Positions 14,111 through 63,473 of a DNA stretch of 64,000 nucleotides are shown here, piece by piece. The stretch's first letter is position 1. Each line of letters opens with the position of its first letter. Position numbers and translations under genes: made by a program. Source of the stretch: Utricularia gibba (taxonomy: Eukaryota > Plantae > Magnoliophyta); the NCBI GenBank assembly GCA_002189035.1, contig NEEC01000010.1, positions 558,001 through 622,000 of the forward strand, written 5' to 3'. The notes beneath the pieces were generated by a model. The model was given only the letters and a program-made list of their open reading frames with translations. It ran no database searches and was not told the DNA's origin.

Positions 14111-14700
14111 TGATAAATGAAAATTTCCTATTGTCGTTGCAAAAATAGAAATCTTCGTATCAAATAAATTTGTAAATTTTAATCCTCACAAAATACAAAT
14201 TAAACATAACATGTAAAGTGGAATTCGGGGTCGATCACAAGGAGCTTGTGCTTGCTAAGTGTTTCGACAGATGCAGAATTCGAAATAACAGTGGTTCTTA
14301 ATCTAAACTCGAAATAATAGTAGTAAACAAGTTCAGTAAACAAGTTCAGGTCTATACGATGAAGGTAACAACGACTGGTTCTAACTGAGAGTAATACTAT
14401 AGGGTCTGCAGGTGGTGTGATGCTAAAATGTGTAATTTAATTTACCATGTTCTTATACTTATACCTTTAAACAATCTAAGTCTACCCAAGTTATTCATTA
14501 TATTTTCAGCTAAGCTAGTTCCCAACATCATCATCAACATTGCAATTAGGTCTACCTGCATGCAAAATGTATAAAACTAGATTTACCCGATCCTACAGAT
14601 TCTACCCGATACTAAGAACTACTGCTCCCGTCTTGAAACTCTAAAATAAACAATAAAAGCATAATTAAAAAGCTATAATTATCATATCCTAAAACATGAA
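14111..14700 (-). mobile_element. Partial A2-family LTR
   Basis: Begins TGATAAATGAAAATTTCC, the inverse of the A2 3' end. Similarity fades at ~14650-14700. Confidence 0.7.
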
Positions 14701-23800: not shown

Positions 23801-26220
23801 AGGAAGAAATGAAGGGTGACCATCAGTATCTCTTTGAAAGTCGAAATGTGTCATGTTAGCTTATTTAATCTTTGGAAGCACTAATTTTGATGAAATTACC
23901 ATGTGTGCTTGAGTGATAACCCGTCTTGCACACTAGCACTCTTTCAATTCTTGGATTCTGGATATAAATGTTAAGTGTCTGCATGATTGTTTGGAAATCC
24001 CTCAACTGGTTAGCTCCTATTAATATTAATTAGGACTTGAGTACAAGTTTAATGTTGTTGTAGCATAATGGAATAACACATATTTTTGAGTATTTTAAGG
24101 TAGTAAAATGACTAATGTTTTGCTGCAAAACTTAAATTTTATTATGTATTTCTATGGTTTTACGACTAGAACCGCCGTTGCATCTTTTATTCCTAACTAG
24201 GACTAAATCGTAGATTTAGGGCCAATCATAGTTCTAATACTTCCTGATGACACACATTTTTCCTGGATTTTATAATACAAAATAGTTATATTTTATTGTG
24301 GTTTAGGTTAGATAAATGTGGTTTTTCATCTTTATGTGTGTTTAAGTTAATTTTGTGTGTTTATGTTCAAAAGTGGTCTAAATCCCTTGATTTAGTCCAC
24401 CACCTTTGTTACTAATGTTTGACTAAGTTCAGTAAAGAGTTCAGCCAAAAAATCAGGCTTACAAATGTGTGGAACAAGTGAAAAAGGGTGCAATACCCGA
24501 AGAGAGACAAAGAGCACTGTTCTGCCACTGCATGCAGTCTGCAAGTTCAGGGCGGGAACAGTGATGAGGTTAGGAACAGTGCAATGGAGTGAAGGAGGGG
24601 AGATATTTTTCGAAAAGGAGAGAAAGCGGGAACAATGGACAGATGCGACTAGCAGAGAACGCACGCAAGGGGGCTTCTCCCCCAACGCGAAAAATACCAA
24701 CCAGAAGAGGGGAAGAAGGCCCTCATTGTCAAGAGCAGCATCAGAGCCCAATCCAGCGCTACTGTTCCGCGCCGTGGATAGTATCAATCAGGCGACAGAA
24801 CAATCTTTATTTTCTTTCCGTTTTCTGAACGTTTCGAGTTTTTGTACCTGATTTGCTTACAATGTTTCTGTTCTTTTCACTACATTATTTTCCAAGTATG
24901 GGTAGCTAAAGCCTTAGGGATGCCTTAAGGTGAAGTAAGATGGTGTGTGCTTAGGGTTAATAATGAAATTTATGTTTGTTCCTTAGCTCTTGTTTCTATC
25001 AATCCATGGGTAGACCTAAGGAGGGGAATAAGTAGTTTTACAACTAAGATGCTTGGTTTAGAGGTAGACCAAAAAATCAAGACGAGAGCAATAGGTGTTA
25101 GTCCGGGGTAGAACCAGTAGAAACAGATAGACCTAATTGCAATGTTGGTTATAATATTGAGGACTAGCGTAGCCGAAAATATGATGAATGACTTGGGTAG
25201 ACTTAGGTTATTTGAAGTTGTGAGTGTAGGAACATGGTAAATTAAATTAAGCACCTTAGCATAAGTTCACCTGCAGATCCTTAAGGCATCTTCATGTTAT
25301 TCTGAGATAGAACCAGTACTTATTGCCTTTCGCATTGAAACCTAATTCCGTTTACTGAACTTACTTGCCATTACTAGTCCAAGCTTAGACTAAGATCTAT
25401 TGTTATTCCTTATCATGCATTTATTAAAACACTTAGCAAGCATAAGCTCTTCGTGATCGACCCCCACATCTATTATACAAGTTTTCTAAATTTGTATTTT
25501 GTGTAGATTATGGCTTATAAATTTATTTTATACAGAGATTTACTTTATTTGCAACGACATTGTTAAAATTTCCATTTATCACTTCCCTTAAGCAATGTTG
25601 TGTATGTAAGTGAACCAAATTCCAAGAAGCCGAAAGAGAATAGTAAAGTGCTAGTAGGTAGGGACAAAATCTGAAAAAGAAAGAACACCAAAATCCAAGG
25701 AGATAGAGATTGGATTTTGGAAATTATGAGAAATAATGAAGAGTGAAAAAAATATCTGAAGGATCTTGAACAACACGCCATAGACTTTTAAGTGGGAGAT
25801 TTGGAGAAAAACTCACAAGAAAAACGAAGAAAATGAACCAGAACCAATCCTCCTTTTTGAATATTTCTTTCGATTATGCAAAACATTACTCTTAGCTCAG
25901 AAAGTTTTAGCTTTTCCGTGCAACTGCTTATGATTTAAGTCACTGCATGTTTTGTTGTTTCTTTTCATGCTGTTAAGTTGTAGAACGAAGATAGTTTTCA
26001 TGCTATGTTATGAAAGTGTTTTCTTTTTCTTTAATATAAATGACTAGGCACTTGGGAGTGCCTTAGGATAAAAGGGGATGATAAGCACTTAACTCCTTGT
26101 ATTCGACTCTAATCCATTTTACTCATATTATTCGTATGATTTGTTGTGAATTAGGATTATAAATTGTATTTGATAGAAGAATTTCTAATTTAATGACGTT
26201 GCATAATTTTTCTTTTATCA
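17894..26220 (+). mobile_element. Full-length but degenerate Athila-like Ty3/gypsy element (A3 LTRs)
   Basis: 5' LTR 17894-18465, then degenerate PBS AGTTGAAGCCGGTGTCGGGGA. gag (ESLHEYWERF), protease-like AMSNMGTSINVMS, RT, RNase H (MCDASSHAIRTVLGQ), and integrase ending VNGHRLK. 3' LTR ~24071-26220. TSD TAGAT/TTGAT. All ORFs broken. Confidence 0.9.
24245..25581 (+). mobile_element. Solo LTR (A2) nested in the 3' LTR of the Athila-like element
   Basis: TGATGACAC...CCATTTATCA, perfect TSD CTTCC, colinear with 44827-46145. Confidence 0.9.
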
Positions 26221-35745: not shown

Positions 35746-36852
35746 CTATTTTCGGTGGACGGATAAAGGTGTTGGTAAGAGATGATGATGACGAAGCAAG
35801 TCAAGCTGCTTTCCGCGGATTATGAGCGCCATTCTTTCGTTCTCCAATTTCAAACGCTCATTCGTCAGCTTTTCCGTTTCCAGCTCCTTTTCTTTCTTCT
35901 TGCTGAACTTCATCCACCTGAGTTTCTCCTTCTCCAGCTCGAAAGCCTGCGAAGCGATGTTCACCCCTCGTTGTTCCAATCCCGTCAATCTTCTCTTCAT
36001 CCATTCACTTTTTTCCATCATGTTCTTCGCCCCATCTTGTAGCACGCTCATCACGTCAGCTTCCAGCTCTTGAACCACGCCTGAGTATTCCACCCCTTTG
36101 CCTTTTAGGATCTTCCTCGATGCTAATTCATCCGTTTCGTCACTCATCTCGTTGCCGTCTTCTTCATCCGTCTCATCACTCTCAGCCTCTTCGTACACGT
36201 TAGGTGGATTTGAGAGCATACGGCCCTTCTGTTGCTGTTGTGGATTGGGGGCTGATTCATGGTGAAAACCTGCTCCTCCGCCACAGCTGTTGTGATAATC
36301 AAACATCTCCTTGAAGAACAAGTGCTTAGAATTGATGAGTTTCTTCACTTCTTCTCTCAAATGGGGAGACAGATGATCCAATTTATCAACCAAACTGGGA
36401 TTCTCCACAACTCTGGATGAATTCCCCTTCCCCAGAATATCGATAGCCCTCTTGTACCTCTTGTTGAGATCGTTGAACTTGTCTTCACACTGTTGAGGAG
36501 AAACATTGAACCCCTTTTCGATCATCGCATATGAAACCATTTTCCATTTCCCCTTCTTCAGCCCAACTCCTCCACCTCTCTTCTTATCATGACCCTCTGA
36601 AACAACATCATCATCAATGAAGTAAACGACCGTGATCAGTATTCTCACCATGTCATCACTCCATTTCATCCTTTTCCATGTAGAAATCTTCCTTTTCCCA
36701 TTCTCCCCAACGCTTTCAGCTCCAGCTTCATCATCAGTCAGAGTCAAAGTTTGGATCATGGGATTTGGGGCAGATGGATGGTCCAGTTTTGAAGATTTCT
36801 GGGACACGGGGAGCAGTTTTTGGAGCTGCAGGTGATGGTTGTGGAATGACAT
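35746..36852 (-). CDS. HRA1: Trihelix transcription factor, GT-gamma clade, HRA1-like; intronless CDS
   Basis: WKRMKWSDDMVRILI, KKGKWKMVS.AM.EKGF.VSPQQCEDKFNDLNKRYK, KKLINSKHLFFKEM, and a C-terminal coiled coil. First in-frame ATG at 36852; a CTG start at 36924 is possible (see findings). Symbol is by family similarity; orthology not tested. Confidence 0.92.
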   Translation of the reverse strand: MSFHNHHLQLQKLLPVSQKSSKLDHPSAPNPMIQTLTLTDDEAGAESVGENGKRKISTWKRMKWSDDMVRILITVVYFIDDDVVSEGHDKKRGGGVGLKKGKWKMVSYAMIEKGFNVSPQQCEDKFNDLNKRYKRAIDILGKGNSSRVVENPSLVDKLDHLSPHLREEVKKLINSKHLFFKEMFDYHNSCGGGAGFHHESAPNPQQQQKGRMLSNPPNVYEEAESDETDEEDGNEMSDETDELASRKILKGKGVEYSGVVQELEADVMSVLQDGAKNMMEKSEWMKRRLTGLEQRGVNIASQAFELEKEKLRWMKFSKKKEKELETEKLTNERLKLENERMALIIRGKQLDLLRHHHLLPTPLSVHRK

Positions 36853-37010
36853 TTGTAGACCAACGTTTGGAAGTTGAAAGTCCGGAGAAAGTTCAAAAGC
36901 ATGATTCCCAGATACATACTCCAGAGTTATAACCAAGAAGACAACTTGATCTGTCAGAGAGAGAACAACTTGAATCCGACAGGAAGAAGAGGCAACAATC
37001 CGCAGGAGCA

Positions 37011-44600: not shown

Positions 44601-44826
44601 AGAATCAGCTTTAAGATATGCAAGTTGAAACAACAAGTGGAAGCAAGTGAAAGAAAGGAGAAACTTAGATGACAGCTGCTGGTAATTTAATGTTTGAAGA
44701 TAGGTTTGTAGTTCCTAATGAAGCTGAACTTAAGTAATAGATCTTAAGAGAAACTCATGGATCCACTTTATCAATATATTTAGGAGGCAACAAAATGTAC
44801 CACGACTTGAAAACATAGTGGTGGTG

Positions 44827-46145
44827 TGATGACATACATTTTTTTTAAATTTTATAATACAACATGGTTATGTTTTATTGTGGTTTAGGTTCGGTACATG
44901 TGGTTTTTCATGTTTTCTGTATCGTTTATGCTAATTTTGTGTGTTTATGTTGAAAAGTGGACTAAATCCTTTGATTTAGTCCACCACCTTCATTATTAAT
45001 GTTTAATTAAGTTCAGAGATTAGCAGCGAAATTAGACTCCAAGACATGTGGATCAAGTTAAAGGGACACAACATCCGAAGAGAGATAAAGAGCACTGTTC
45101 TGCCGCTTGCAGTCTGCAATCAGGTCGAGAATAGTGTTGGTGTCAATAATAGTGCATTGAAGTAAAGGAGGGGAGATATTTTTCGAAAAAGAGAGCGGGA
45201 GCTGGGAGAGAACGCACACAAGGGGGCTTCTGCTCCAGCATGAAGAACACTGATGAGAAGAGGAGAAGGAGGACTTAATCCTCAAGAACACCACCAGAGC
45301 TCAGTTCAACGCTATTGTTATGGACCGTGAATAGTAGCAAACGGGTTTCAGAACAATCTCTATTTCTTTTTCGTTTACTGAACGTTTTGAGTTTCTGTAT
45401 TTAACTTACAACGTTTCTATTATTTTCGCCACATTATATTCCTAAAACTTTAGGAATGCCTTAAGGTAAAGCATAGTGGTGTTGATCTAGAGTTAATAAT
45501 GAAATTTATATTTGTTTCTTAGTTCTTATTTTTATTATTCCATAGGTGCACCTAAAGAGGGGAACAAGTAACTTCGCAACTAAGATACTTGATTTAGAGA
45601 TAAACCAACAAGTCAAGGCGGGAACAATAGGTATTAGTTCAGGGTAAAACCAGTAGAATCGGGTACACCTAGTTCTATATACTTTGCATGCGAGTAGACT
45701 TAATTGTAATGTTGGTAATGATATTAGGGACTAGCTTAGCCAAAAATATGATAAATAACCTAGGTAGACTTAGGTTGTTTGAAGTTACGAGTATACGAAT
45801 ATGGTAAATTAAATTAGGTATCTTAGCACCACACCTTGCAGACCCTTAAGGCATCTTCGCATTACTCTGTATTAAAACTAGTGTATGTTATTTTCAGCAT
45901 TGAGACTTGATCCTATTTATTGAATTTACCTACCACTGTTAGTTTGAGCTTAGACTATAAACCACTGTTACACCGAATTTTGCATCACGAAAAACACATT
46001 GCAAGCACAAACTTCTTGTGATCGACCCCAAATTCCACTTTATATTTTGTGTTTAATTTGTATCTTATAAAGATTAGGGGTTATAAATTTATTTGATACG
46101 AAGATTTTTATTTTTGCAATGACATTAGGAAATTTCCGTTTATCA
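44827..46145 (+). mobile_element. Solo LTR (A2) in the Tekay integrase
   Basis: TGATGACATAC...TTTCCGTTTATCA, TSD TGGTG (44822-44826 and 46146-46150). Confidence 0.9.
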
Positions 46146-46882
46146 TGGTGACTAGAGGTGGGTTTAGTTTCGAACCGTATGGTTTCGGTTCGCTGTGGTC
46201 AACGGTTCCGGTTTCGGTTAAGAACCATATCCCAAAATCTTGAATCGAACCAGAACCGGAACCGAGATTCGCAAACCGAACTGTAACCGAAACCGATCGG
46301 TTACTGTTTGTAGTTGTTTTCCAAGCACCCATATGAATCATTGTGTATGTATGGCAGTGAAATTTTTAATAATTATCAATTTTATCATATTTGGATATTA
46401 TCAAACAATATATTTAACAATATTAATTTTTATATTTAACTAGATATACTATTTAATATACTATATTAATTTATAAAAGACTTTAATTTAAATTACTTGA
46501 TAAAATATCCTAATAAAGTATAATTAAAATCAATATAATTTGTGACTTAAATAAATGAAATAATTGATTAAATTATTAGCATTTGAATATGCATTTGATA
46601 AAATTAAATTTTTTGAAACAAATACAATAAGATTACAAATCATATAAAATGAATAGAGTTATTATTTATATATTTATTTTTTAAAATAAAGATGTTCATA
46701 TAATTGTTTTATATAATCTCTTATAAGTATTGTGTATTTTTCAAATTAAACTAATAATATCATCTATTTCATAAAGTTTTTCCAAACTTCATATATTTTG
46801 AAAACAAAAAATAAGAATGATTAAATAGATTATATTTTCAAAATTAATATCACATATTTCACATCTCTTTTACGGAACAGTT

Positions 46883-47112
46883 TCTAGACACCTTTAATAA
46901 TCGTTAAGGGTGTCTAGACTTCAGAGAAGATCCCAGACACTCTTAATAATGGATCAGAGTGCCTGGACAACCACTAACCACAATTCTAATTCTAAAGTAC
47001 ACGATACCTTCATTAAGGGTGTCTAGACTCCAGAGAAGATCCCAGACACCCTAAATAATGGATCAGTGTGCCTGGATGAACTTTAACGACAACTCTAATT
47101 CTAAAGTACACA
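46883..47112. repeat. 109-bp tandem duplication with alternating-orientation (T/C)C(T/C)AGACACC motifs and a hairpin
   Basis: Units start TTAAGGGTGTCTAGACT at 46904 and 47013. Inverted pair TCTAGACACC / GGTGTCTAGA at 46883-46919. Confidence 0.85.
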
Positions 47113-47568
47113 CTGTCGAGGTATTAGAGGCACCCTTAGAAATCATTATACGTGCCTCCAAAATTAATTTAACGAATTTAATACTAACAACAATATAATT
47201 GTCTTTTAGAAAAAAGAGTCAACAACAAAAGTATTCCAATTATAACATAAGTGTTCAAAAGAATTAATATTAGAGGCTCCCTCTAGCAATCTTGTAAGCA
47301 TGCATAATACTCCCATAAGGCTATCCTATTCAGTTCTCGTTAACATACTTTGGAACATCATGAGCATACCGTAACCCTTCAAGGAAAGTCCGTATCTCAC
47401 CATCAACATTTAGTGATGCATCATCCCTATTAGTATGCGAATAAAGACTTGGAAAAACGGCATTATTTTCCTAAAAAATTAAGGGTTAGTTTTGATGTAT
47501 AACCAAGTGTATGCTAGAGTAGAATAGCAAAAATAACTTATCGGATTTTTCATTGACTTGTGAGGCGA

Positions 47569-48682
47569 TGATAAACGAAAAATTATGCAATGTCGTTAAA
47601 TGCAAATTTTCCTATCAAGTAAATTTATAACCTAACCCACATTCAAGCATAAAACAATTATGAGCATAGTGATTAGGGTCGAACATGAAGAGCAGGTACT
47701 TGTCAAGTGATTAGCCAAAGCATGAAATCAGTGTCAAGTGGTAAAATTGGTCTTAACTAGGACTAAGTCAGGACTACAACCAAATATAGTAAAGAAAAGT
47801 AACAAGTTTGGATTCGGTAGTTTCTGGAATGGAATGGGTGATGCCTTGGGACTCCTAGGGGATGTATGCATATCACTAAACAAGCTCACATAAATAAAAA
47901 ATCATTCAACTAACTCACAAGATCTAGGTCTACCCGAATTCTTGTTTTTCCCCCTAATCTTTGGTCTACCTCTAATTAGGGTTGTTAGTTGGGTTTCACT
48001 ACCTCCCCCTCCTGGATCTATTCTGGTTTGTTAAGGAAGTAGTGTGACTTATGATTTATTAGGTCTAAGGATAGATTAGCATATTTCTCCCCTTCTCACC
48101 CCAAGGCATCCCCTCTAAGTGCTTATCTAATCATGGTAATGGAAAGTAAAACATCTTCATAGTAGATACTAAGCAACATCTTGGCTACAAATGCTTAACA
48201 ACAACGAGCAATATGAAGCAAAAGTAGGACAAACACTTCATTCACACAGGAAATCCAAATCTAGTCTTCACTAGGAATAGTAAACATGAAGAACGAAAAT
48301 AATTTCTCAAGAGAAGCTGTGTTCTTCTGGTTCGTCGTCCCCTCCTCCTTCTTCCTCCAGAAAAATCTCTAGAAATTTGTCTTGAGTCTCCAAAGGGAGA
48401 TCTACTTTTCTCTCCACCTTTCCTCCCTTTTTGTCCAAAATCTTCCTTTTTCACCTCCTTGGACTTTGTGTGTACTCTTCTTCAGACTTCTATCACCTTT
48501 CCTGCCACCATACTGTTCATACTCGGCTCCTTGGGATTTGTGTTGCGACCCATGCTACATTGTTCGAAAGGAACTGTTAGAAGGTTGGGACTAAATCGTA
48601 GAAACAGTCAATTAAGCTTAATTTTTGTAGCATAAAATGAGTAAATTCCATGCATTGAGCCACTCAAAAATATGTGTTATCA
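47569..48682 (-). mobile_element. Solo LTR (family A) inserted in the HAD domain of the cargo gene
   Basis: TGATAAACG...GTGTTATCA, perfect TSD GGCGA, splits the DDSP|HK codons. Confidence 0.93.
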
Positions 48683-49559
48683 GGCGAATCATCAATCAAT
48701 AAAGTATTGTGATAGTCATATCTTGTGTTCAATCCATTGTTGACAGCCCATACACGACTCAATCCATAGTCATCGTTTGATCCCACACAAAAATGAGTTT
48801 ATCAAATAACGAAGGTGGAAAGACTCATTTAGTGATTGTTTGTAGCTGCTCTCTACAAAATAAATCAATTGCAAGAATTGGCACAATTCTAAATACCAAC
48901 AAAAAAAAAGATGCAACACACATACCTGCCACGGGATGATCATAAGGCTACATCAAAATTATCCAAACACCACCTAATAAAGTCATGGGCATACAGACAT
49001 AGAAAGAATGCATAAATTACAGCAAAAATTACCTATAATATCTCAAAATCTTGAATGCATATAACACAAAAAAATAAGTGCTGTCTTAGTACCTGATCGG
49101 CTATATATAATTTTATCCGGGGGAATTCGTGACCTTGATGGTCCAGCCCTATACACGATGTCTGCGAGCACACCATTGACATCCAAGATTATCAACTTTT
49201 GTTGAGGCTCAAAGGCACTCAAAAAGGGTCCGGTATATGTCCAACGGCTCTCATAATAATCCAACTTGTAGCGAAGCTCTTCATTCTCCTTTGCTATAAA
49301 TTCAAGTCTCTCATCCACATTATTCAGTCCATGTGTAAGCTCGTCCCCTTCAACATCATTACCCTCTTGTGTCCTCTCATTCCTAAACAAGTCTTTATTC
49401 TTTTGGGAGACTCTATGATTCTTCAACACACCACACCAATAACGTTTTGTCCCCAGTGCATCCACAAATGATAATAAAATGTCAATAAACTCTTTTACAT
49501 ACTTGAGAAGAAGAGTATAAGATCTTGTACATCCCTATTGTGCAAGGTATTAAATCCTA

Positions 49560-50050
49560 CAATAAAAATATATTTATTAATAATAGATTCAACAAAAATA
49601 TTTAATAAAAATATTCAATATGAGTAATTTCAATAAGTTTAAACTCGATAGCAATAAATTCAAGAATAAAAATATTCAATAATACTAAACTCAATAAATA
49701 TATACTTAATAAGAAAAGATTAAAAAATATTCAATAATAATAAATTGAATAAAAATAGATAAAAAAAGTATTCAATAAGAATAGATTGAATAAAAATAAA
49801 TTCAAAAAAATATATCTTTCAAAAATATTGAATAAGAACAGATTAAAAAAAATTCAACAAACAAATTTAATTAGATTAGATTGAATAAAAGTAGATTTCG
49901 AAAAATATTCAATAAAACCTAGATTTAATATGATTAACTTCGCTAAAAATATTCAATAAAACTATTCAATAACAATTGATTTAATAAGAGTAGATTAAAA
50001 AAAACACTCAATCATAATACATTCAATACAAAAATTCAATAAAAATATGG
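49560..50050. repeat. Degenerate intronic array of about 15-bp AAAAATATTCAATAA / AGATTGAATAAAA units
   Basis: Dozens of imperfect copies of ATTCAATAA and AGATT...AATAA fill the large intron of the cargo gene. Confidence 0.75.
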
Positions 50051-51013
50051 AATATTTTGATTCATATTTCTTCTAGCAATAAAATAAAAGATTTACCTTT
50101 CGCCTTACCTACTTCACTCGAATTAGGATACATTTGAGGAAATTTGGTTTTCATTGAAGGACGTATCCAAACAAAACTTGTCCACCATTCCTCAAATCTT
50201 CTTCTCACATCGTTCACTAGCACCAACCCTTTTTTCCCCTTTAGGGTGAAGTGGTTCTTGTTTAGAGTCCTAGAGCATACACTCACATCAAAAAAATAAC
50301 GAAGTTCCACTTCAAGAGATAACTACTCACAAATACTCACAAATGTCAACACATATGAGATAAATCTTGGAATCAAATGAGATTAAGGAATCTCTAAACA
50401 TTCTAATATTTCCTCTAAAAAAGGCAATAATGGTAAATGCAAATCGCAACGAAAATGCTCCATGTTTAAAACAAATCCCATTGGACCCACACGGTTTGGA
50501 ATTTCACTCTCAATCAACTCATCCGGTTCTTTGTCCCAAATCTCATATTCATTCGATATCAAGAATCTAGTTCTCAATTTTTCAGAAGTGTGCATTTAAA
50601 ACACCTATAGGTATTGTATAAAAAATCAAACTACAATAATTGGACAAGGTATTTCAATTTGGAACATAGATCAGTAACCCATGGTTGAAAATAAATCACT
50701 TACCTTGTGTGGGTTTTTAGGAAGAGTGGATGAGACCATTTCCAAGCACCCACATTTACTCATATGGGTGTCTGGGTAGGGGTGTTTGAGACAGTTTTCC
50801 AGACATTCACTTCCATCGTGTGGGCGCCTCGGAAGGATGTCTGCAAGTATACAACCATATTCCAGGCACCCACATTTGCTCATATGAATGTTTGGTAAGG
50901 ATATATCCAAAGGTTTCGGTAAGTGCCCAGATCATATAATTTTAGTGAAAGACATGAATACAACATTTTATTACAAAGTAATAATACTTCATGGAGCACA
51001 CAATGTTTCCAAA

Positions 51014-52410
51014 TTAGGAGTCTTCAACTTCATCTTCACTTGAACTGGAGGATAATGTTTGATTTATTTTCAATGCATCCAGCCAATCCTTTAGACAAAT
51101 GCATGCCTTCAGGGTCTCTATGTTCAACTTGGACCGCTTGTGATTAAGAACTCTTCTCCCTGCTGAAAGCGCACTTTCGGATGCCACTGTAGATGCTGAA
51201 GGTGTTAGAAGATCTTTGTCCATTCTATCCAAAATAGGGTAAGTAGTAGAATTTGTCTTCCATCAACCCAATATATCAAAGTTGTCATCATCAACACCCT
51301 CAACAATAAGAATATTATTGTAAAGTGTAATTTGATCAACAGAATTTAATGAATATGATGAAGAGGATGACACAAATGAGCTATATTGTTATTTTCTACG
51401 AATAATGTCCATTGGATTGCGACTGCCAAACATTGAATGATTACATGTTTTAGGAATAGGAAAACTAAGATCACTATATTTAGAAGCATACAGGGAATAC
51501 ATGACATGTAGAACATTGTTAGCATCAACATCTATTTCATCACAATTTTTAATGGAAAAAACAATATCATCTACACTAAATGACTCTGAAATGCATTCAA
51601 GTAATGTTTTCACCCCTCTAGACTTAACGCGGGGATCTAAAATAAGTGCAATAAGAAACATATTTCAAAAACTTTGATGATCATAAAAAGAAAACGAAAT
51701 TTTACAAATACATGAAAGCACAAGTTGAGAAGTGGATAATAAATACCACTCAAAATCTTAGTACAAGAATAAAATGTTTCTAATAAATTTACTAAATCTC
51801 TTATTTTTTTCAAAAATATAATGAGCTAAGAAATTGAAACCCGTAAAAGATTCAAAAAATTCAATAAGAACATTTTTCATAAGGAATCAAAAATTGTAAC
51901 ATGTCATATGAAGAATTCCATTTAATTGGACAATCACTTTTAAATTTTCGATAAAAAATATTCCTTTCTTGACAAACTCTTTTAAAATTATCTCTTTTAT
52001 TAGGTGTAGTTCTAATCATACTAACTAAATCACGAATAGGAGTTAAAAAAACTTCACACTTTTTCAAACCATTTAAAACACACAAATTTAAGATATGACA
52101 CCTTGTGTGGAAGAAAATTGTATTTAACATAGGATTTATGCTACTTTTCAAAATGTCGATAGCATTTTTATTTGCAGATGCATTATCCAAAGAAATAGAA
52201 AAAATCCTATCAGATATTCCAGAAAATGCTGTGAACTTTTCAATGATTTTAGCGATAGAAAAACCATTATGTGGTGATGGTTATTCTTGAAAAGCTAAAA
52301 TTCGTTTTTATATACATCACGAATTATCTACCCAAGAACATGTAATAACAATATAACTCTCATTGTTACAACATTTCCAACCATCACAAGTCAAACAAAA
52401 ATTACATTTT
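51014..52410 (-). pseudogene. hAT transposase pseudogene (5' BED region lost)
   Basis: LTCDGW, SLDNASAN, FHTRCHILNL, DCPIKWNSSYDML, ILDPRVK, and dimerisation domain SASTVASESALSAGRRVL...CLKDWL. Frameshifts and stops present. Confidence 0.93.
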
Positions 52411-53367
52411 TGATAAACGAAAAATTACGCAATGTCGTTAAATTGCAACATTTCCAATCTTCAAGCATAAAATAATTATGAGCATAGTGATTAGGGTCGA
52501 ACACGAAGAGCAGGTGCTTGCTATATGAGTGTGAATGCATGTAATCAGTGTCACGTTGGTAAAATTGGTCTTAGCTAGGAATAAAACAGATCTATGATGG
52601 AATGCAGTAAGGAAAAGATAACAAGTTTGGATTCGATAGTTTCTGGAATGGAATGAGTGATGCCTTGGGACTCCTCGGGGATGTATGCCTATCACTAAAC
52701 AGACTTACATAAATCAAAAATCATACAACTAACTTACAAGATCTATGTCTACCCGGATTCTTGTTTTTCTCCCTAATCTTTGGTCTACCTCTAATTAGAG
52801 TTGTTAGTTGGGTTTCACTACCTCCCCCTCCTGCATCTATCCTGGTTTGCTAAGGAAGTAGTATAACTTATGATTTATTAGGTCTAAGGATGGATTAGCA
52901 TATTTCTCCCTTTTCACCCCAAGGCACCCCCTAAGTGCTTAGCTACTCATGGTAATGAAAAGTAAAACATCTTCATAGCAGATACTAAGCAACATCTTGG
53001 CTACAAATGCTAAACAACAACGAGCAATATGAAGCAAAAGTAGGACAAACACTTCGTTCACACAGGAAATCCAAATCTAGTCTTAGCTAGGAACAGTAAA
53101 CATGAAGAACGAAAATAATTTCTCAAGAGAAGTTGTGTTCTTCTGGTTCGTCGTCCCTTCTTCTTCCTCCAAAAAAATCTACAGAAACTTGTCTTGAGTC
53201 TCTAAAGGGAGATCTGCCTTCTCTCTCATCTTTCCTCCCATTTTGTCCAAAATCTCCTTTTTCCTCCTTGGATTTTGTGTGTACCACTTTTCAGACATTT
53301 GGACTCATCTTCTGCCACTACACTGTTATTCGGTTCCTTGGAATTCGTATTGCGACCTGCACTGCAC
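52411..53367 (-). mobile_element. Truncated family-A LTR with adjacent deletion of the transposase 5' part
   Basis: Starts TGATAAACGAAAAATTACGC. Matches 58570-59520 up to GACCTGCACTGCA, then similarity stops. No second TSD. Confidence 0.85.
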
Positions 53368-55980
53368 AATTGCTCGAGTACCTTCAACCATGAATTGTAT
53401 GTAGAAGTTGAAATAGAATTATTTTTGATAATGAGTGATGAGAAAATAAAAGAAAGTAGTGGAAAACTATAAGATAATCATATCATATATATAAATAAAT
53501 TTTGTTATTAAATTAATAACAACGGTTACTGTCAAAACCATGTGCAACTCTATAATGTGCACAATCACAAACGCATGTACTAGCCGTTGAGATTAATATA
53601 TACATAAAAAATAAGTATTTTAAATATATACTTATATTTAAATATGCATTGAATTACCAATATGGATAAATTAGTAACCTTGACCGCAAATAGTTATTGA
53701 AAAAAATATATAGATAATGAAATGTTAAAATATGTATTTGATTGAATTATCGAAATTATTCAATAAATTTGAGTAATTTAGTAATTTTAAATTGAGGTTA
53801 TACATTTTATATTTATTAATCTCACTCTAATTTTATAATTTATAGGATTAACTCAATAATTATTCATAATCATTTATAAATAATTCATATACATTTATTG
53901 AATATTTAGCATTGTTACATTTCATTGGATTTATTATGTAATATACTATGTTAAATTCTAAAATACCTTAATTTAGAGTATTTGGTAAAATACCTTAATA
54001 AACTATAATTAATATCAACATAATTAGTGACTTAAATAAATGAAATAAATTCTTAAAATGATAAAATTATCAGTAATTAAAAATTTCTACAATAAAATTA
54101 AATTTTTGGAAATAGATAGAACAACATTACAAATTATATAAAATCAATAAAATTATTTTTTATATTTCTTTTACATTTTAATAGTAACCTTTTATCTAAT
54201 CGTTTGTAAATACTATGCATTTTTTAAATTAAAATCAAAATATCATCTATTTTCAGATAACCGGAACCATGGGACATCCATCTCCTGGAACCGAACCGGA
54301 ACCAGAACCGATGGTTTCGGTTTAAACCGCGGTTCCAGTTCAAACCGCGGTTCCGGTTCAAACCGAACCCACCTCTAATGGTGGCCTAGGATGAAAAGAG
54401 ATATTGCAAAGTTTGTAGCTAAATGTGACACATGCCCAAGGATCAAACGGAACACCATTGTTGTTGAACTATCAGAAAGAACAATGGAAGTTTAACAATA
54501 TTACGATGGATTTAATAGTGGAATTACCAAGAAGTATCAGAAAGAACAATGCTATTTGATGATTGTGGACAAATTGACCAAAGTTGCACATTTTCTTGCG
54601 GTAAGGGAACATGAAAGGATGGAAAAACTTGTTGAACAATATATAAAGGATGTGCTTGCATGGTCTGCCTTTAGCAATTGTTTCAGATAGAGACACACAC
54701 TTTGTATCAAGGTTTAGGCAAAGTTTGCAACAAGCAATGGGAACAAAGTTGAATTTTAGTACATCTTAACATCGTCAGAGTGATGGCCAAATCGAAAGAA
54801 TGAATCAAATGCTAGAAGACATGTTGAGAGTTTGTGTTTTAGAGTTTGGTGGATCATGTGACAAATACCTAGCCTTAATGGAATTTTCTCACAACAATAG
54901 CCACCACAGTAGCATAAACATGGCACTCTATGAGGCATTCTATGGAAGGAAATGTATGAACCCTATGTACTGGAGTGAAATATGAACCCTATGTACTGGA
55001 GTGAAATAGGTGAAAGACACATTGTAAGACCTGAAATAATCAAAATTACTAAAGATGTTGTGGATGTAGTTCAAAAAAACTTAAGGATAGCTCAAAATAG
55101 GATGAAAGAATGGGCTGATATGCAAAGAAGACCATTAGAGTTTCTGGTTGGAGACTTTGTATATCTCAAGGTTACTTCAATGAAAGGAGTATCCCGGATC
55201 AAAAGAATAAACTTGCTCCGAGGTATATTGGTCCATACCAAATTGAGAAAAGAATTGGATCAGTGACATATATGCTAAGATTACTTGAAGAGTATGCAAG
55301 AATGCACAACGTTTTTCATGTTTCTCAGCTAAAAAAATGTTTGGATACTAACCAATGTAAGGTGATTCCTGAATCTATTTTTGTTGATGATCAACTATCC
55401 TACAAAGAAACACCAATCAAGATACTTGATAGACAAGAAAGGACTAAGATAATTCATATGGTGAAGGTTCAAAGGTCTAATCACAGTATAGAAGAGGCTC
55501 CTGGGAGTTGAATGTGAGATACTTGTGGAGTTTCCGGAGTTGGTATATATGACCTTAATCGAGTTTCAGGACGAAACTCTAAATAAGGTGAGGTGAATGT
55601 GATGGTTCAATTTTTAAGTACTTTTCTCTTTAGTTTTAACTTGTTCTACCTCATACTAGCCTACCCAATCAAACGTATCTAAGTGACCATCATTGCATAC
55701 GTGTCATGTGTCATCTCGTATGTGTGCCATGCTTCCTCTTGCATGTGTGCCACTGCCCTATTGCATGTGTGCCATTTGTATGTCATGCATGTGTACCACA
55801 TGTTGCACGTAAAATAAGGATGAGATGGAGACAGGAATATATATATATATATATAATGGAATGTAAGGTTCTTTCACTCATATTTGAGTTTTCCAAAGGC
55901 AAGGAGGAAAGTTGAAAGAAAAAGTTATAGTACCTAAGGTGAATAAGATTTAAAATTGGTTTGGAGTCTAAGGTGTTAAC

Positions 55981-58472
55981 TGATAAACGAAAAATTATGC
56001 AATGTCGTTAATTTTGCAAATTTCTCCTATCAAATAAAATTTATAAACCTAATTCACATCAAATCATATGGAAAATATGATCATATGGGACTAGGGTCGA
56101 ACACGAGGAGCTAGGTGCTTGCTATGTGAAAGTTAATGCATGAAATCAGTGTTACGTTGGTAGAATTGGTCTTAACTAGGACTAAGGAAAAACTACGATG
56201 AAATGCAGTAAAGAAAAATAACAAGCTTGGGACTCGGTGGTTTATAATATGAAATGGATGATGCCTTGGGATTTCTAGGGGATGTATGTTTATCACTAAA
56301 CAAGCTCACACAAACTATAAATCATACAACTAACTTACAAGGTCTAGGTCTATCCAGACTTTTGTTTTCCTCCTAATCTTTGATCTACCTCTAATTAGGG
56401 TTTTCAAGCTGGGTTTCACTACTTCCCCCTCTTGGATCTAGCCTGGTTTGTTAAGGAAGTTGCGTGACTTATGGTTGTTTAGGTCTAAAGATTGATTAGC
56501 ATATCTACCCCCCTTTCACCCCAAGACACCCCCTAAGTGCTTAGCCACTCATGTCAAGAGAAAGGAAAACGTTCTCATAGCATATCCTAAACAACATTCT
56601 GGTTTTAAAGTTAAACAATAACAAGCAATGCATAATAGAAAGAGAAAGGACAAATTGTTCACGCAGTGAATCTAAAACTAGTCTTAGCTAGGAATAATAT
56701 GCATCAAGAACTAAAATAAATCTTCAAAGAGAAGCTGTGTTCTTCTGGTTCGTCGTTCCCCTTCTTCTTCCTCTAGAAACCTTCTCCGAAAATTTGTTCG
56801 TGAGTCTCCAATGGGGAGATATGTTGTTAAGTGTCATTTTCTAGTTATTATTTAGGTATTATTATGTATTAATCCAGTGCTAAGTCGCTCAATTAAGAGT
56901 CCTATTATTAATTATTTGATTTTTATTAGAAATTTCTATTTTCCAATTTTGTATATATTTTATGTCTTTTTTCTCACACTTTGACTGAGACATGTCAGGA
57001 GACTGTCATGGAGTGTTGCAGGAGTATTGCAGGTGGTCAGAGTCTCACATTTCGTGCCTTGTACGTGACTTCGAACAATTGTGGGCGGAGGACTGACACT
57101 AGTCAAGGCCCCTGATTTACGGCATGTCAGAGTCTGCAGCAATGATTGGGCACTAACTTGCACGCAAAGGAAAGCCACTGGTGCATGCAAGACAAAAGAA
57201 ATGATGGGAAGGGGGCCCAAAGGAGTTAATGCACATGGAGGAGTGATATAAAAGCCACTTGGAGCACTTAGTTTCGGACTTTTTGCCATTTCCTTTCTAG
57301 ACTTAGAACTTCTAAGTTCTTCCTCCCCTCAAGGAGGAAGAACACTTAGCTTCCTTTTCGTTTCTGTTTCCATGACCCTTTGTGGCTAAAACCCTTTAGT
57401 TTCTAGGAGAAGATGAAGTTTCCTTCCAAGTCTTGAGCAATACACTCGGTTCTTCGCTGAATTCAATTTGGATTCTGCATATTTCCACGCGCTTTGTTGC
57501 AGTCTTTCTATAACGATTCTTAATCAAGGTCCATGAGTAGCAGGCCACTCCTCGCGGATTTTGGTGAAGATCAAGGTGAAGAGCACCAACTCCAACCTTG
57601 CTGGTTCGAGGGAAGTAGTGGATTGTTTGTGGCCTAGGTACCGCGACAGTGGACAGGTTGTGACCACGGACCCGCTACTGGCCATTGGCAACAGCTGAGC
57701 ACACGCACGCAAGTCGGTTTTGAAGGCAATCGAAGGCAATCCTCTCTTCTTCGTAATCGTCTAAGGGGAATCACATGAGGCTATTCCTGTGCCTCCTTGT
57801 CAATCAGAGTATAAGGGAGAGTAAGCTATTCCTTGCTCCTATAACTAGCTATTCGGAAGAAATCAGTGAAAACCGAGGCAAGGACGGACAAAGGAAAGAG
57901 ATGGAATCTTATTCCAAGGAACTGCATCCCGTAGTCAAGGCCCATTACTTAGGTTGTAACTTTTATTTCTACATTCCACAAACCCTCTTTTACAAAACCG
58001 TGACATTTTGTAGAAGTTTCTTACAAAACACTTTTCACGAAAACCAACTCCCTGTGATCGATACTCGTACTACGCTATTTGGTGTTTTACGTTTTAAATA
58101 TTTAAAATTTGTTGAGGAAACGACACGCAACATCTGCCTTCTCTCTCTATCTTTTCCTCCTTTTTGTCCAAAATCTCCCTTTTTCCTCCTTGCATTTTGT
58201 GTGTACTATTTTTCAGACTTTTGGACTCATCTTCTACCACTACACTGTACATATTCGGCTCCTTGGGATTTGTGTTGCGACCTGTACTACATTGTTCAAA
58301 GAAGATTATTAGAAGGCTGGGACTAGATCGTAGATTTAGTCCCAACTAAGACTAAAATAACATAACTCCGATACTTTGCGCAAAAATATAGAACTTGGCA
58401 GTAAAATCTGATTTTTATAGCACAATATGAGTAATTTCCATGCACTCAATCACTCAAAAATATGTGTTATCA
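55981..58472 (-). mobile_element. Solo LTR (family A) in the Tekay 3' LTR, itself containing a family-B solo LTR
   Basis: TGATAAACG...GTGTTATCA, perfect TSD TTAAC. Confidence 0.92.
56825..58132 (+). mobile_element. Solo LTR (family B)
   Basis: TGTTAAGTGTC...GACACGCAACA, decayed TSD TATGT/TCTGC. The host LTR reads GGGAGA|TCTGC|CTT, as in the 53208 copy. Confidence 0.85.
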
Positions 58473-58569: not shown

Positions 58570-59742
58570 TGATAAACGAAAAATTATACAATGTCGTTAA
58601 ATGCAAATTTTTTTATCAAATAAATTTATAACCTAACTCACATTCAAGCATAAAACAATTATGAGCATAGTGATTAGGGTCGAACACGAAAAGCAGGTGC
58701 TTGTCAAGTGATTAGCCAAAGCATGAAATCAGTGTCATATTGGTAAATTGGTCTTAGCTAGGACTAAGACAGAATTAAAACGAAATACAGTAAAGAAAAT
58801 TAATAAGTTCTGGAGCTCGGTTGTTTCTAGAATGAAATGGGTGATGCTTTGGGACTCCTAGGGATGTATGCCTATCACTAAACAAGCTCAAAGAAATCAA
58901 AAATTATATAACTAACTCACAAGATGTAGGTCTACTTGGATTCTTGTTTTTCCCCCTAATCTTTGGTCTACCTTTAATTAGGGTTGTTAGTTGGGTTTCA
59001 CTACCTCCCCCTCCTGAATCTATCCTGGTTTGCTAAGGAAGTAGTGTGACTTATGATTTATTAGGTCTAAGGATGGATTAGCATGTTTCTCCCCTCTTCA
59101 CCCCAAGATACCCCCCTCTAAGTGCTTAGCTACTCATGACAATGAAAAGTAAAACATTTTGATAGCATATCCTAAGCAACATCCTAACTACAAATGTTAA
59201 ACAACATCGAGCAATATGAAGCAGAAGTAGGAAAGACACTTCGTTCACAAGAAATCCAAATCTAATCTTAGCTAGGAACAGTAAACATGAAGAACGAAAA
59301 TAATTTCTCAAGCGAAGCTGTGTTCTTCTGATTCGTCGTCCCCTCCTTCATCTTCCTCTAGGAAAATCTCCAGAAACTTGTCTTTAGTCTCCAATGGAAG
59401 ATCTGTCTTCTCTCTCATCTTTTCTTCCTTTTTGTCCAAAATCTCCCTCTTTCCCTCCTTGGATTTTGTGTGCTCCAATTCGCAGACTTTTGGACTCATC
59501 TTCTGCCACTACACTGTGCATATTCGGCTCCTTGGGATTTGTGTTGTGACCTGCACTGCATTACTCAAATAAAACTATTAGAAGCTTGGGACTAAATCGC
59601 AGATTTAGTCCCAACTAAGACTAAATTGACACTACTGCGGTACTTATGTGCAAAAATATAAAACTAGGCAATAAAGCATAATTTTTGTAGCACAACATGA
59701 GTAAATTCCATGCATTGAGTCACTCAAAAATATGTGTTATCA
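58570..59742 (-). mobile_element. Solo LTR (family A) in the Tekay 3' LTR
   Basis: TGATAAACG...GTGTTATCA, perfect TSD TTTTC. Confidence 0.92.
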
Positions 59743-61819
59743 TTTTCCATTACTTTGGATATGATTGTGTTTACTCTTCGAATCTTTTTACATTACATGA
59801 AGGCTCTAACAAGGGAGTAGGTTATTTCATGTTATTTCTGAAAAAGCTATTTTTGAGTCCCAAAAATGTGATTCTTTTCACTAATAGCCACCCCGTTATC
59901 TTTGAAATGATATTTCAATATCTATCTCTATGTACTATGTAATAAAGAAGCTAGGAAAGAATGGAGGAGATATAGATGCATATCTTCAGCAACATGGTTG
60001 TACTACGAGCACTTTGGCTAATATGTCAAGCATGTCTAAGGCACCATATATAAGTAGAAGACCAAAAAGTATGAACGTATGTAAGAAAGATATCATATGT
60101 TATGTATGGCTTAAGTTTATGATTCTTTGGTGGGAGATAGCTCTATTGACTATAGAACCATGGACAAGGGAATTTTATGCGTCACCTATCATAGTCGAAT
60201 AGCAACACTAAGGTTCAATGGTTATGAGAAGTGAGAAAAGATAGATATGAGAATTCATAATGTGTTTCAAGTTTCTTTTATAACTCTTTATATTCTTTTT
60301 TGATTTGACTTGTTTTAAAACTTAGAAGCATGATCACTCTTTTATTTATTTTAGGGGATGAAAGGAGCCAGTAGAGGTTAAATGATCAACCATACTTTTA
60401 AGAGTCCTATGAATATGTATACATAGTAAATGTATGTATAATATATATTATATTTTGAATCTATTTGTATAAGTTTATGAACTACGTTAAATAAAAACAT
60501 TTTGACAGAGTCTTATGTCTTGTTTATTTATATATTTATCCATTTTAATATTAATAGATAGTATTATGAAAAACACCTTGGGTTCTAGTGTTTTAGCTAG
60601 AATTGGATGGTCATGGTTCATCTTTCCCGAGCCATAAAAGTGGGTCGTGACACTATGCATCCTTTGTTATTGTTGAACTTTCGAACCAGGATTATGCTTA
60701 TGATATGTAATGAAAGTATTTTCATTTACCTTGTTATGAGTAGCTAAACATTTAAGAGTGCCTTGAGGTAAAGGAGATTAGCATGTTTGTTGTTCACTAA
60801 GCCATATTTATCATATAATCATATTATTTCTTTAACAAACTAGGATAGATTTAAGAGGGAGATGTAGTGAAGCCGTTGATTAAAAATAAGTTTCTTTAAC
60901 AAACTAGTTAGTGAACAATCCTAACTAGAGGTAGATTAAAAATTAGTATAAATAAGGGTTTGGATAGACTTAAGCCGTTGATTGTTAGGTGAATAATTTA
61001 TTATTTTGGTGGGATAGATGTAATAATTTACATGCTAATCTTATGAGTCCCAAGATATCATCCCATCTTATCTTAGACAATAGCAGAGTTCAGTGATTTA
61101 TTGTTTTTCTTTCTTATATATTATCATAGAATTGAATGTGTTAGTTTAGACTTAATTTTTTAACTATGACAAAAGAATCATGCATCAACCTTCATACCCA
61201 AGCACATAACCCCTTGTATTCGATCTTAGTCCATTATTCTCATATTTTTCATATGGTTGTGAATTAGGTTTACAAATTTTATTTGATAGGAGAATTTACA
61301 ATTTTAATAACTTGCATAATTTTTTATTTATCAAATGACTATTTGAGAAAAAAAACGAAGTAAAGATACATGATGCAAGAAAATACCAATGCAACCTTTT
61401 ATTTAGTAAATACTTCTTTTCAATATATATTTTACAATTTCATTTATCACTGCCTTCCATCAGTAATATTGTTGTCTTTATAAAGTTATCTGAACACAAC
61501 AAGTTTCCACTTAGTGTTAGTGCATTATTTGGTATTGTAAAGTGTTCAAAAGTTGCTCAGAAAAAATTATTTAAAATATTCTTAAAGGTAAAAATTAAAA
61601 TTGTTACAGGTTTACGAGACTCATATGAAAATTGATGAACTAGTTTCGTATGAATCATTTTACTTGAAGATTTGACAATTAGGATACCTAAACCAATATC
61701 TACCTCATTAAATGTTGGAAAACCAACTTGCAAGAATATTTTCTTTGTAAACATCTTTTGATTAGATTAAAATTCTTGTATTTTCGATTAATAAATTTTT
61801 TTATTGTGAAATATGCATT

Positions 61820-62750
61820 CCATGGATAGAAAGTACAAATTATGTCTCAAATATGCGATTGGTAGATATTTAGCCACCCCTTTCAAATCTTAGAGGCTCA
61901 ATCCAGATATATTGTGGCACTCTTCATAATATAAGCACCATGCATACTTGATCAAAAGAACATAAAGTTAATAAAAATGAGTTACCATATCATGATGAAC
62001 ACAAGGAAGAGATTTTAGATTTTTCTATCACTCAATAAATGGACAACAATAATGTTATCAAGATGTGTTTAGAGTTCGAAGCAACTAAAAATGAAATTGT
62101 GCAACTGAGAGATACTATCTACCAATATGAAACAAGATATCTTATGCTCATTCCTCAAGATGTTGATACATCGAAACCTATGAAATTGATCATTCTTGAT
62201 ATTAATGGTCTACTTGATGATGTGGTGTTCATGGACAAATGGTGAGTGATTGGAAGACAAGATTGCATCATTGAACATCGAGCAATTAGCATAATACATT
62301 TTACATCTCTAACTGTATGTGTAATAATGATGTCTATTTTTCATTACAATTTATATCATATCAAATTATATCAAATTTCTAGATTGATAAATGGAAACAT
62401 TCGATGTTGCATTTTGATCCTCATGAAAAAAAATAAGTTGAAACATTTATAACTTCATTTTCCTTGCTTCTATTATATTAAAACATTCGCCACTTTTTTT
62501 TATGTAGTACACTTGTACGTAAAGTAATCAATTATATTATGGTGAGTTGCAGTTATTGAAAACTTGTATTTTGTTAAGGAATAAGTCAATGTAATGATAT
62601 GGGAATATGTATTGACTGGAGCTTCAACACCATTAAATCTAAAGACTTGCGATGCATTTGGAATGATGCTATAACGTTCAAATATCATTGCAATACAATT
62701 GATACATTGTTAATCGATGGCTCATTGGAGAAATCACTTCTAAATCAGGT
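61820..62750 (+). pseudogene. Second, more decayed coiled-coil plus FCP1-like HAD gene
   Basis: LEFEATKNEIVQLRDTIYQYETRY...MKLIILDINGLLDDVV aligns with LEFIAKENEELRYKLDYYESRW...QKLIILDVNGVLADIV of the hAT cargo. Further on: SFNTIKSKDLRCIW...IDTLLIDGSLEKSLLNQ. Confidence 0.8.
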
Positions 62751-63473
62751 AATACACTTTTTTTTTTATAGAACTAATATTAATTCATCTATGTTAACTT
62801 ATTTTTATCATATTCAATAGGTGACCAATGTAATATTTTTCTTTTCTTACAAGATAATGCAATATTGAGTGATGAATACATTCGATTGTAGAATGTTATA
62901 TGTAAATCTGTTGTGTTATGAATGTTTTATTCTCTAGACCAATTATTTTATATAAATAATCGTTTTAATCTATTATATGTAAATTATATATATATATATA
63001 TATATATAATTAATTATACAAATATTTATATATAATTTAAATGGAAGAATTTGTATTTATCTTTTGCGTTTGTAAATTATTTAAGTATTCAATATTATAA
63101 GTTATGTTTTATAGCATTTTGTATTTTAGTATGCAATTAAATACATAAATTAATAAAATTAGGTTGATTTTGAACATGATAATTTTAAAGAAATGCATCA
63201 CTGTAATTGTAGTCTTGGAGAAATACCGCATTTCTTTGAAGTTGTAATATTAAGGATGGTAAAATTGCAAACCATTTTGAAGGAATACGAGGTTTGTATT
63301 TTGGAATTTTTCACTCTTTATTTTTCTGGGCAACTAGCGGCATGGTGTCAGCGGTGGCTGACACAAGCACCCAAATGTTCACAAATAAGTACACTACACA
63401 GACGGCTGTAGGGTAGGCTGGTCAACGAGGCATTTGACCACACCCTTCCCTCGCTGTTTCGCCGGTTTACAGT

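Follow-up and report, generated by a model that had tools for sequence, protein, structure and literature searches.

A probable two-gene hAT transposon family in Utricularia gibba, represented by a dead copy with a spliced second gene

Can a plant hAT transposon carry, next to its transposase, a whole spliced gene that serves the transposon itself? This question is raised by an element at positions 46153-54377 of a 64,000-nt stretch of Utricularia gibba DNA (assembly GCA_002189035.1, contig NEEC01000010.1, positions 558,001 to 622,000 of the forward strand; hereafter the window), in which a multi-exon gene (referred to as the cargo gene) lies behind a hAT transposase. We consider it rather probable that the element represents a hAT transposon family with two genes and many copies, of which it is a dead member, and whose second gene would be a working accessory gene. 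Contigs from four independent sequencing studies, described below, indicate that the cargo gene is a component of the repeated family and not a one-off capture.

Boundaries and transposase of the element

A preliminary description of this locus had claimed terminal inverted repeats (TIRs), an 8-bp target site duplication (TSD) and a transposase, and had called the copy dead. These features, together with the long terminal repeats (LTRs) and other repeats of the element, are located as follows (window coordinates, with the strand where one applies).

46145-46152: left copy of the hAT TSD, ATGGTGAC; its first base is the final base of the solo LTR-F
46153-46170, plus strand: left TIR, TAGAGGTGGGTTTAGTTT, found by inverted-repeat and pattern search
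46171-46320: left subterminal region, with 11 AACCG/CGGTT motifs
46426-46769: AT-rich block A′, a direct repeat of block A
46884-47160: imperfect palindrome array after the cargo stop codon, YYAGRCACC - loop - GGTGYCTRR
50735-50900: two 120-nt palindrome units between the transposase stop and the cargo start
51017-52409, minus strand: hAT transposase remnant, about 465 C-terminal codons in three frames with several frameshifts
52411-53366: LTR B, of the same family and orientation as LTR A (see below) and without its last ~125-185 nt
53911-54252: AT-rich block A, the element's 5′ region when read on the minus strand and the partner of A′
54255-54359: right subterminal region; with the adjoining right TIR it holds 11 AACCG/CGGTT motifs, the last starting at 54361
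54360-54377, minus strand: right TIR, TAGAGGTGGGTTCGGTTT on the minus strand
54378-54385: right copy of the hAT TSD, ATGGTGGC

An inverted-repeat search showed the two 18-nt TIRs to be complementary at 16 of 18 nt, with the first 12 nt (TAGAGGTGGGTT) matching perfectly. When the entire 64 kb was searched for degenerate termini (allowing up to 3 mismatches), both TIR sites were recovered along with one site carrying 3 mismatches, against 0.19 sites expected from shuffled sequences. The flanking 8-mers agree at seven of eight positions, as a hAT 8-bp TSD, and the left 178 nt and the right 138 nt of the element each contain 11 AACCG/CGGTT motifs, versus 29 in the 55.8 kb outside it. The boundaries are thereby established by TIRs, TSD and subterminal motif enrichment, and both terminal features of the preliminary description are borne out. 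With its short TIRs starting with TAG.G, 8-bp TSD, short subterminal repeats and transposase with a hAT C-terminal dimerisation domain (hATC), the element resembles plant hATs of the Ac/Tam3/Tag1 type; the TAG.G start fits the YARNG pattern.

The surroundings of the element reveal the order in which the insertions occurred. Immediately to its left lies a reverse-oriented solo LTR of 1319 nt (LTR-F, 44827-46145, termini TGATGA...TTATCA) that has its own perfect 5-bp TSD, TGGTG, at 44822-44826 and 46146-46150. To the left of LTR-F we found reverse transcriptase/RNase H blocks followed by ...KMYHDLKT*WW, and to the right of the hAT element the same frame resumes as WPRMKRDIAKFVAKCDTC, the start of a Ty3-type integrase. 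Taking out both LTR-F and the hAT element joins these flanks and restores a single Ty3 pol reading frame. The hAT target straddles the final base of LTR-F, which is itself nested in the Ty3 integrase codon run. The insertion order is thus the Ty3 element, then LTR-F, then the hAT element, and then LTRs A and B within it. Relatives of LTR-F with 74-77% identity were also observed elsewhere in the window (24245-25581, 8979-9673 and 14111-14636).

The claimed transposase does lie inside the element, on the minus strand, where hATC (PF05699) matches at 51017-51262 with E=1.3e-15 (57.4 bits versus a Pfam cut-off of 21.4); for the RNase-H-like catalytic core there was a match to PF14372 upstream of hATC, weak and below its cut-off (E=0.021). 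The transposase's N-terminal part, adjacent to LTR B, is absent from this copy. Since only ~110 nt separate LTR B from the AT-rich 5′ region, this part must have been lost, most simply through one deletion that also took the end of LTR B. Neither the truncated LTR B nor the missing N-terminus, in which the BED/DNA-binding region would lie, had been mentioned in the preliminary description; its statement that the copy is dead is correct. The window also contains a different hAT transposase remnant at 11108-12390 (minus strand) with 33-40% protein identity to the transposase studied here, and no cargo-like sequence was detected beside it.

The second gene and its occurrence in other copies

Downstream of the transposase stop codon, and in the same orientation as the transposase, the cargo gene comprises five coding blocks running from 50595 to 47333 on the minus strand. 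This is the multi-exon gene that the preliminary description had placed there.

50109-50595, minus strand: exon 1, with the ATG start and an N-terminal domain that resembles Transposase_28 by eye only; two stops interrupt its frame, at 50383-50385 and 50323-50325
49557-50055: AT-rich tandem repeats of intron 1, AAAATATTCAATAA-type units
49093-49491, minus strand: exon 2, a charged coiled-coil-like stretch and then motif I, KLIILDVNGVL
48926-48947, minus strand: exon 3, 22 nt, AG/GT-bounded, with a phase clash with exon 2 in this copy
48683-48852, minus strand: exon 4, 5′ part, FVWDQ ... NTLLIDDSP, with frameshifts and stops
47569-48682: solo LTR A, TGATAA...TTATCA, splitting exon 4
47542-47568, minus strand: exon 4, 3′ part, ...SPHKSMKNP, containing the TSD copy GGCGA (47564-47568); the donor is ATAAGT
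47333-47470, minus strand: exon 5, NAVFPSLY ... LEGL ... DVPKYV, followed by the stop

Introns 2 and 3 have clear GT/AG sites, and exons 1 and 2 can be joined in frame via a phase-1 donor and acceptor. The strings that had been quoted for this gene (LDVNGVL, WDQ, LLIDDSP and LEGL...DVPKYV) are all present on the minus strand, collinear and within GT/AG-bounded blocks. Every part of the gene is thus represented, from the ATG to the stop, yet the gene is dead: the two in-frame stops of exon 1, the frameshifts of exon 4, the phase clash between exons 2 and 3 and the ATAAGT donor together mean that it could not be upheld as the "complete" gene of the preliminary description.

The solo LTR that had been reported in the cargo gene was confirmed as LTR A, which is flanked by a perfect 5-bp TSD (GGCGA, at 47564-47568 and 48683-48687). 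LTR B, located 4.8 kb away in direct orientation, is 86% identical to it. Further copies or fragments of this LTR family occupy 55981-56823, 58132-58472, 58570-59742 and 60666-61333 of the window, and the family is very abundant in read data.

Whether the cargo gene belongs to the family or to this copy was examined with Logan contigs of four runs from four studies (three labelled as the same organism and one as plant metagenome), which were placed on positions 46101-52100 at 80% likeness. Only the longest contig pieces were displayed, and it is the contig positions that were used here, not depth as a measure of copy number. All 30 bins of 200 nt in this region were covered in all four runs by contigs that were 80-95% alike. 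At many places in the cargo gene, the inter-gene region and the transposase, the copy studied here differs from a letter shared by 10-30 contigs in each run, indicating that many other copies exist. Contigs lie on the cargo gene (e.g. records 2-7, 11-13, 20 and 21) as well as on the palindrome array at 46884-47160 (records 1, 10, 19 and 27).

Several of these contigs also inform on structure. Six contigs in three runs (X1, X4 and X5) derive from cargo copies free of LTR A, as they join 47562/47564 precisely to 48682/48684 and thereby skip 1119 nt. In X5 record 20, a contig of 1578 nt, a shorter intron connects exon 1 (50006-50706) with exon 2 (49092-49402), and other contigs lack ~380-395 nt of the intron 1 tandem repeat (joints 49610 to 50006 and 49619 to 49998). 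The junctions between the cargo gene and the rest of the element are in part bridged: X5 record 22 (50746-51094) and X1 record 8 (50934-51269) run from the transposase stop into the upstream palindrome array, and X5 record 17 runs from the left subterminal repeats into block A′. Because the contigs of four studies include both LTR-free cargo copies and such junction-bridging pieces, the cargo gene is best read as a trait of the family.

The preliminary description had itself named two outcomes that would speak against such a family, namely a cargo confined to this copy and nearly identical to one host gene, as after a one-off capture, and a cargo with termini and a TSD of its own. As to the former, the cargo is found in contigs of many other copies at 80-95% identity. 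As to the latter, when the zones flanking the cargo were scanned against each other for inverted 12-mers, only the palindrome units were returned, none of them with a flanking duplication, so that no pair of TIRs with TSD surrounds it. Neither outcome thus applies: the cargo is not confined to this copy, and nothing shows it to be a nested element of its own. Among runs recorded as RNA, none was found to contain this stretch.

Predicted protein and signs of past selection

At window positions 61528-63290, on the plus strand, the cargo gene occurs once more, as a strongly diverged and decayed copy. It was recognised with tblastn through an exon-1-like part (E=0.015) and an exon-2 part with 32% identity over 113 aa (E=1.6e-8), and it displays the coiled coil, LDINGLL and a collinear TLLIDGS block, with a possible last exon near 63200-63290. 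BLASTN detected no nucleotide similarity between the studied cargo and this paralogue, which therefore keeps protein-level similarity while similarity at the nucleotide level is gone. Between the two copies, identity at codon positions 1, 2 and 3 amounts to 0.46-0.49, 0.54-0.56 and 0.26-0.29, respectively, the third positions being at the chance level of this AT-rich DNA. This pattern is as expected after long divergence under protein-level constraint and would be a sign of past selection on the cargo. No hAT termini are visible around the paralogue within the window. An LTR fragment (60666-61333) lies just upstream of it.

As to the nature of the protein, the collinear short motifs of the cargo (hhhhD.., WDQ, LLIDDSP, NA.FP and LEGL..DV, read by eye) resemble those of the FCP1/SCP phosphatases (NIF, PF03031). 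Profile and structure databases were queried with the stop-free fragments of both cargo copies, which are short. Pfam searches with every such fragment (E up to 10) returned neither NIF/FCP1 (PF03031) nor Transposase_28 (PF04195), the latter including the 70-aa and 86-aa pieces of exon 1; PDB sequence searches (E up to 10) gave chance-level matches only, and ESM Atlas searches gave no usable match. The two domain labels that had been proposed for the gene, an FCP1/NIF-type HAD phosphatase and Transposase_28, thus found no profile match in either copy and in exon 1, respectively, and the HAD label depends on motifs read by eye.

Motif I itself departs from the D-x-D-x-T signature of HAD phosphatases and from the FCP1/SCP proteins. 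It reads D-V-N-G-V in exon 2 (49093-49491) and D-I-N-G-L in the 61.5-63.3 kb paralogue, giving D-x-N-G-h, so that the nucleophile Asp is kept in both copies, and the second Asp and the Thr are replaced in both. If the fold is indeed that of the HAD proteins, a conventional phosphatase would be unlikely.

Wider protein searches added little. An exhaustive search of protein representatives with the 140-aa exon-2 open reading frame (ORF) yielded one spurious repeat protein (P0001), a word-indexed protein search was blank for the cargo piece and gave one weak 242-aa match for the transposase piece, and two metagenome scans (with a single protein and with the two-copy alignment) returned no confirmed locus. 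The searched collections evidently hold few plant transposon proteins.

Elsewhere in the window, the longest ORF (35749-36936, minus strand, 396 aa) encodes a Myb/SANT-like DNA-binding domain (PF13837, E=1.5e-13) and falls within the one stretch that is richer in GC (46% at 34-36 kb). Either a trihelix-type gene of the host or an ORF of a transposon may be present here.

Origin and possible role of the second gene

Read on the minus strand, an intact member of the family would start with a TIR and AACCG repeats, followed by the AT-rich 5′ region, the transposase, a short palindrome array, the five-exon second gene, another palindrome array, a direct repeat of the AT-rich block from the 5′ region, and finally subterminal repeats and the other TIR. 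In the product of the second gene, a coiled-coil-like stretch would follow the N-terminal domain and precede a HAD-like domain whose motif I is D-x-N-G. We propose that the transposon would have had a working accessory gene in this second gene, supplied in trans. Its product would probably be phosphatase-like, though non-canonical or altered in its catalysis, and would act on factors of transcription or silencing and not on DNA.

Two kinds of repeats mark the element besides its termini. Blocks A′ and A form a direct and not an inverted repeat (75% identity over 353 nt, E=1e-65; BLASTN). The palindrome units, of which a further one lies at 46321-46359, have loops of 14-18 nt between YYAGRCACC and GGTGYCTRR; the best of them fold far better than shuffled sequences (z of -6.9, -3.6 and -2.4) and the others are decayed, and nine of the 15 half-motif matches in the window fall inside the hAT element. 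According to a model for Pack-type acquisition that includes hATs, two neighbouring insertions in the same orientation can move as a single element that takes along the intervening DNA (PMC8903248, section 9). If two such hAT insertions were mobilised jointly here, this would account for the direct repeat A/A′, and it is the likely route by which the cargo was acquired.

A different account would be that a single capture brought an entire gene, of the host or of some other transposon, into this hAT lineage, with which it has since been amplified as a passive passenger without a role. Gene capture by hATs is indeed documented (PMC2528002, PMC8903248), both cargo copies in the window are dead, motif I is without one catalytic residue, and no RNA run contained the stretch. 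However, five exon blocks and their introns have all been retained, which is not how a fragment looks, and the 32%-identical paralogue is still built alike, its third codon positions being at chance level; we therefore regard the passenger as unlikely, while still giving it real weight. The cargo gene might also stem from another transposon, nested in the 3′ portion of this hAT copy. Such an origin might be suspected from the palindrome arrays that bracket the gene (at 46884-47160 and 50735-50900, with one more unit at 46321), which could be mistaken for termini, and from the diverged copy at 61.5-63.3 kb that stands without visible hAT context in the window. Such a nested element was rejected, as the systematic search found no inverted matches other than the palindrome units and no TIR/TSD pair bounding the cargo, and as contigs of other copies (records 17, 22 and 8) bridge both the transposase stop to the upstream array and the left subterminal repeats to block A′; its probability seems very low to us. 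Lowest of all is that of LTRs A and B being the two LTRs of one retroelement-like unit, with the cargo-transposase arrangement between them a recombination artefact. Their common family, direct orientation and 86% identity would suit it, but LTR A has its own perfect TSD on both sides, contigs of other copies join precisely across it, and the family is so abundant in the window (at least 3 further copies) that two independent insertions are unremarkable. The TSD of LTR A and the LTR-free joints contradict such a unit.

The reading as a two-gene family with an accessory gene meets with several objections of its own. The Logan contigs are short and stem from different copies, so that their tiling does not prove one intact two-gene element, and none of those displayed bridges 50706-50746. 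Neither an intact copy, nor another full element with a TSD of its own, nor RNA evidence was seen. An NIF/FCP1 or Transposase_28 domain was not confirmed by any profile or structure search of the fragments, and the term "enzyme" is doubtful because two residues of the HAD phosphatase signature, the second Asp and the Thr, are absent from motif I. The codon-position alignment was itself selected at the protein level, and the resulting pattern cannot tell whether selection acted inside a transposon. Finally, the acquisition model draws on a single 75% repeat in AT-rich DNA.

A further-reaching proposal, which we put forward as a speculation and think improbable as it stands, is that the cargo protein would be a dedicated accessory factor common to unrelated DNA-transposon superfamilies. 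As an altered phosphatase-like protein, it might bind or modify phosphorylated components of transcription or silencing, and the palindrome arrays might be cis sites for the cargo protein or the transposase. If true, plant transposons would have a class of helper that has not been described before, of a kind with VANC or the ULP1 domains.

Transposons with an accessory or captured gene are of a known kind. In mudrB (MuDR), VANC (VANDAL21), TNPA (En/Spm) and ORF1 (PIF/Harbinger), a second gene likewise lies within the TIRs and is kept with the transposase; unlike the cargo gene, these genes have a demonstrated role in transposition or anti-silencing, and they belong to other superfamilies and are unrelated to it in sequence. 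ULP1 domains are carried by both MULEs (KI-MULEs) and CACTAs (PMC2528002) and similarly place a host-type enzyme domain downstream of a transposase, but the domain there is a C48 peptidase, whereas the one here is HAD-like by its motifs. Transposase_28 has been reported from the extra ORFs of 23% of Retand elements (PMC6317226); the N-terminal block of the cargo resembles the Transposase_28 pattern by eye only, with no profile match.

For hATs themselves, the preliminary description had stated that plant elements are usually described with only a transposase. This is incomplete, given that hAT elements carrying transduplicated genic DNA (Hatvine-6; PMC2528002) and Pack-hATs (PMC8903248) have been published, and it holds insofar as these carry fragments and not a conserved whole gene. 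Pack-hATs and Hatvine-6 share with the present family hAT termini around DNA of genic origin, and the acquisition model fits repeat A/A′ (PMC8903248, PMC2528002). Those elements are mostly non-autonomous, with gene fragments as a cargo that often occurs in few copies only; the family studied here would have a whole multi-exon gene beside the transposase across many diverged copies. The usual Pack-type definition (non-autonomous, with gene fragments) does not describe it, since the element includes a transposase gene and none of the five exon blocks is missing from the cargo. Classical hATs of the Ac/Tam3/Tag1 type possess the transposase only, whereas this family adds a spliced second gene and private palindrome arrays. 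A literature search pairing hAT or MULE with FCP1, NIF, PF03031 or Transposase_28 found no description of this cargo gene, and a survey from 2025 of active TIR transposons in plants names domains of accessory proteins and, at least in its running text, mentions no phosphatase. The gene itself appears to be new, as does the presence in a hAT of a conserved second gene that is whole.

Plant hATs have so far been treated as single-gene transposons, with reported gene capture limited to fragments. The case for an accessory gene is strengthened by the signs of conservation in the cargo protein sequence. A whole spliced second gene that is kept across diverged copies would add the hATs to the superfamilies with accessory genes, and would also suggest a phosphatase-like protein as a new kind of interface between transposon and host.

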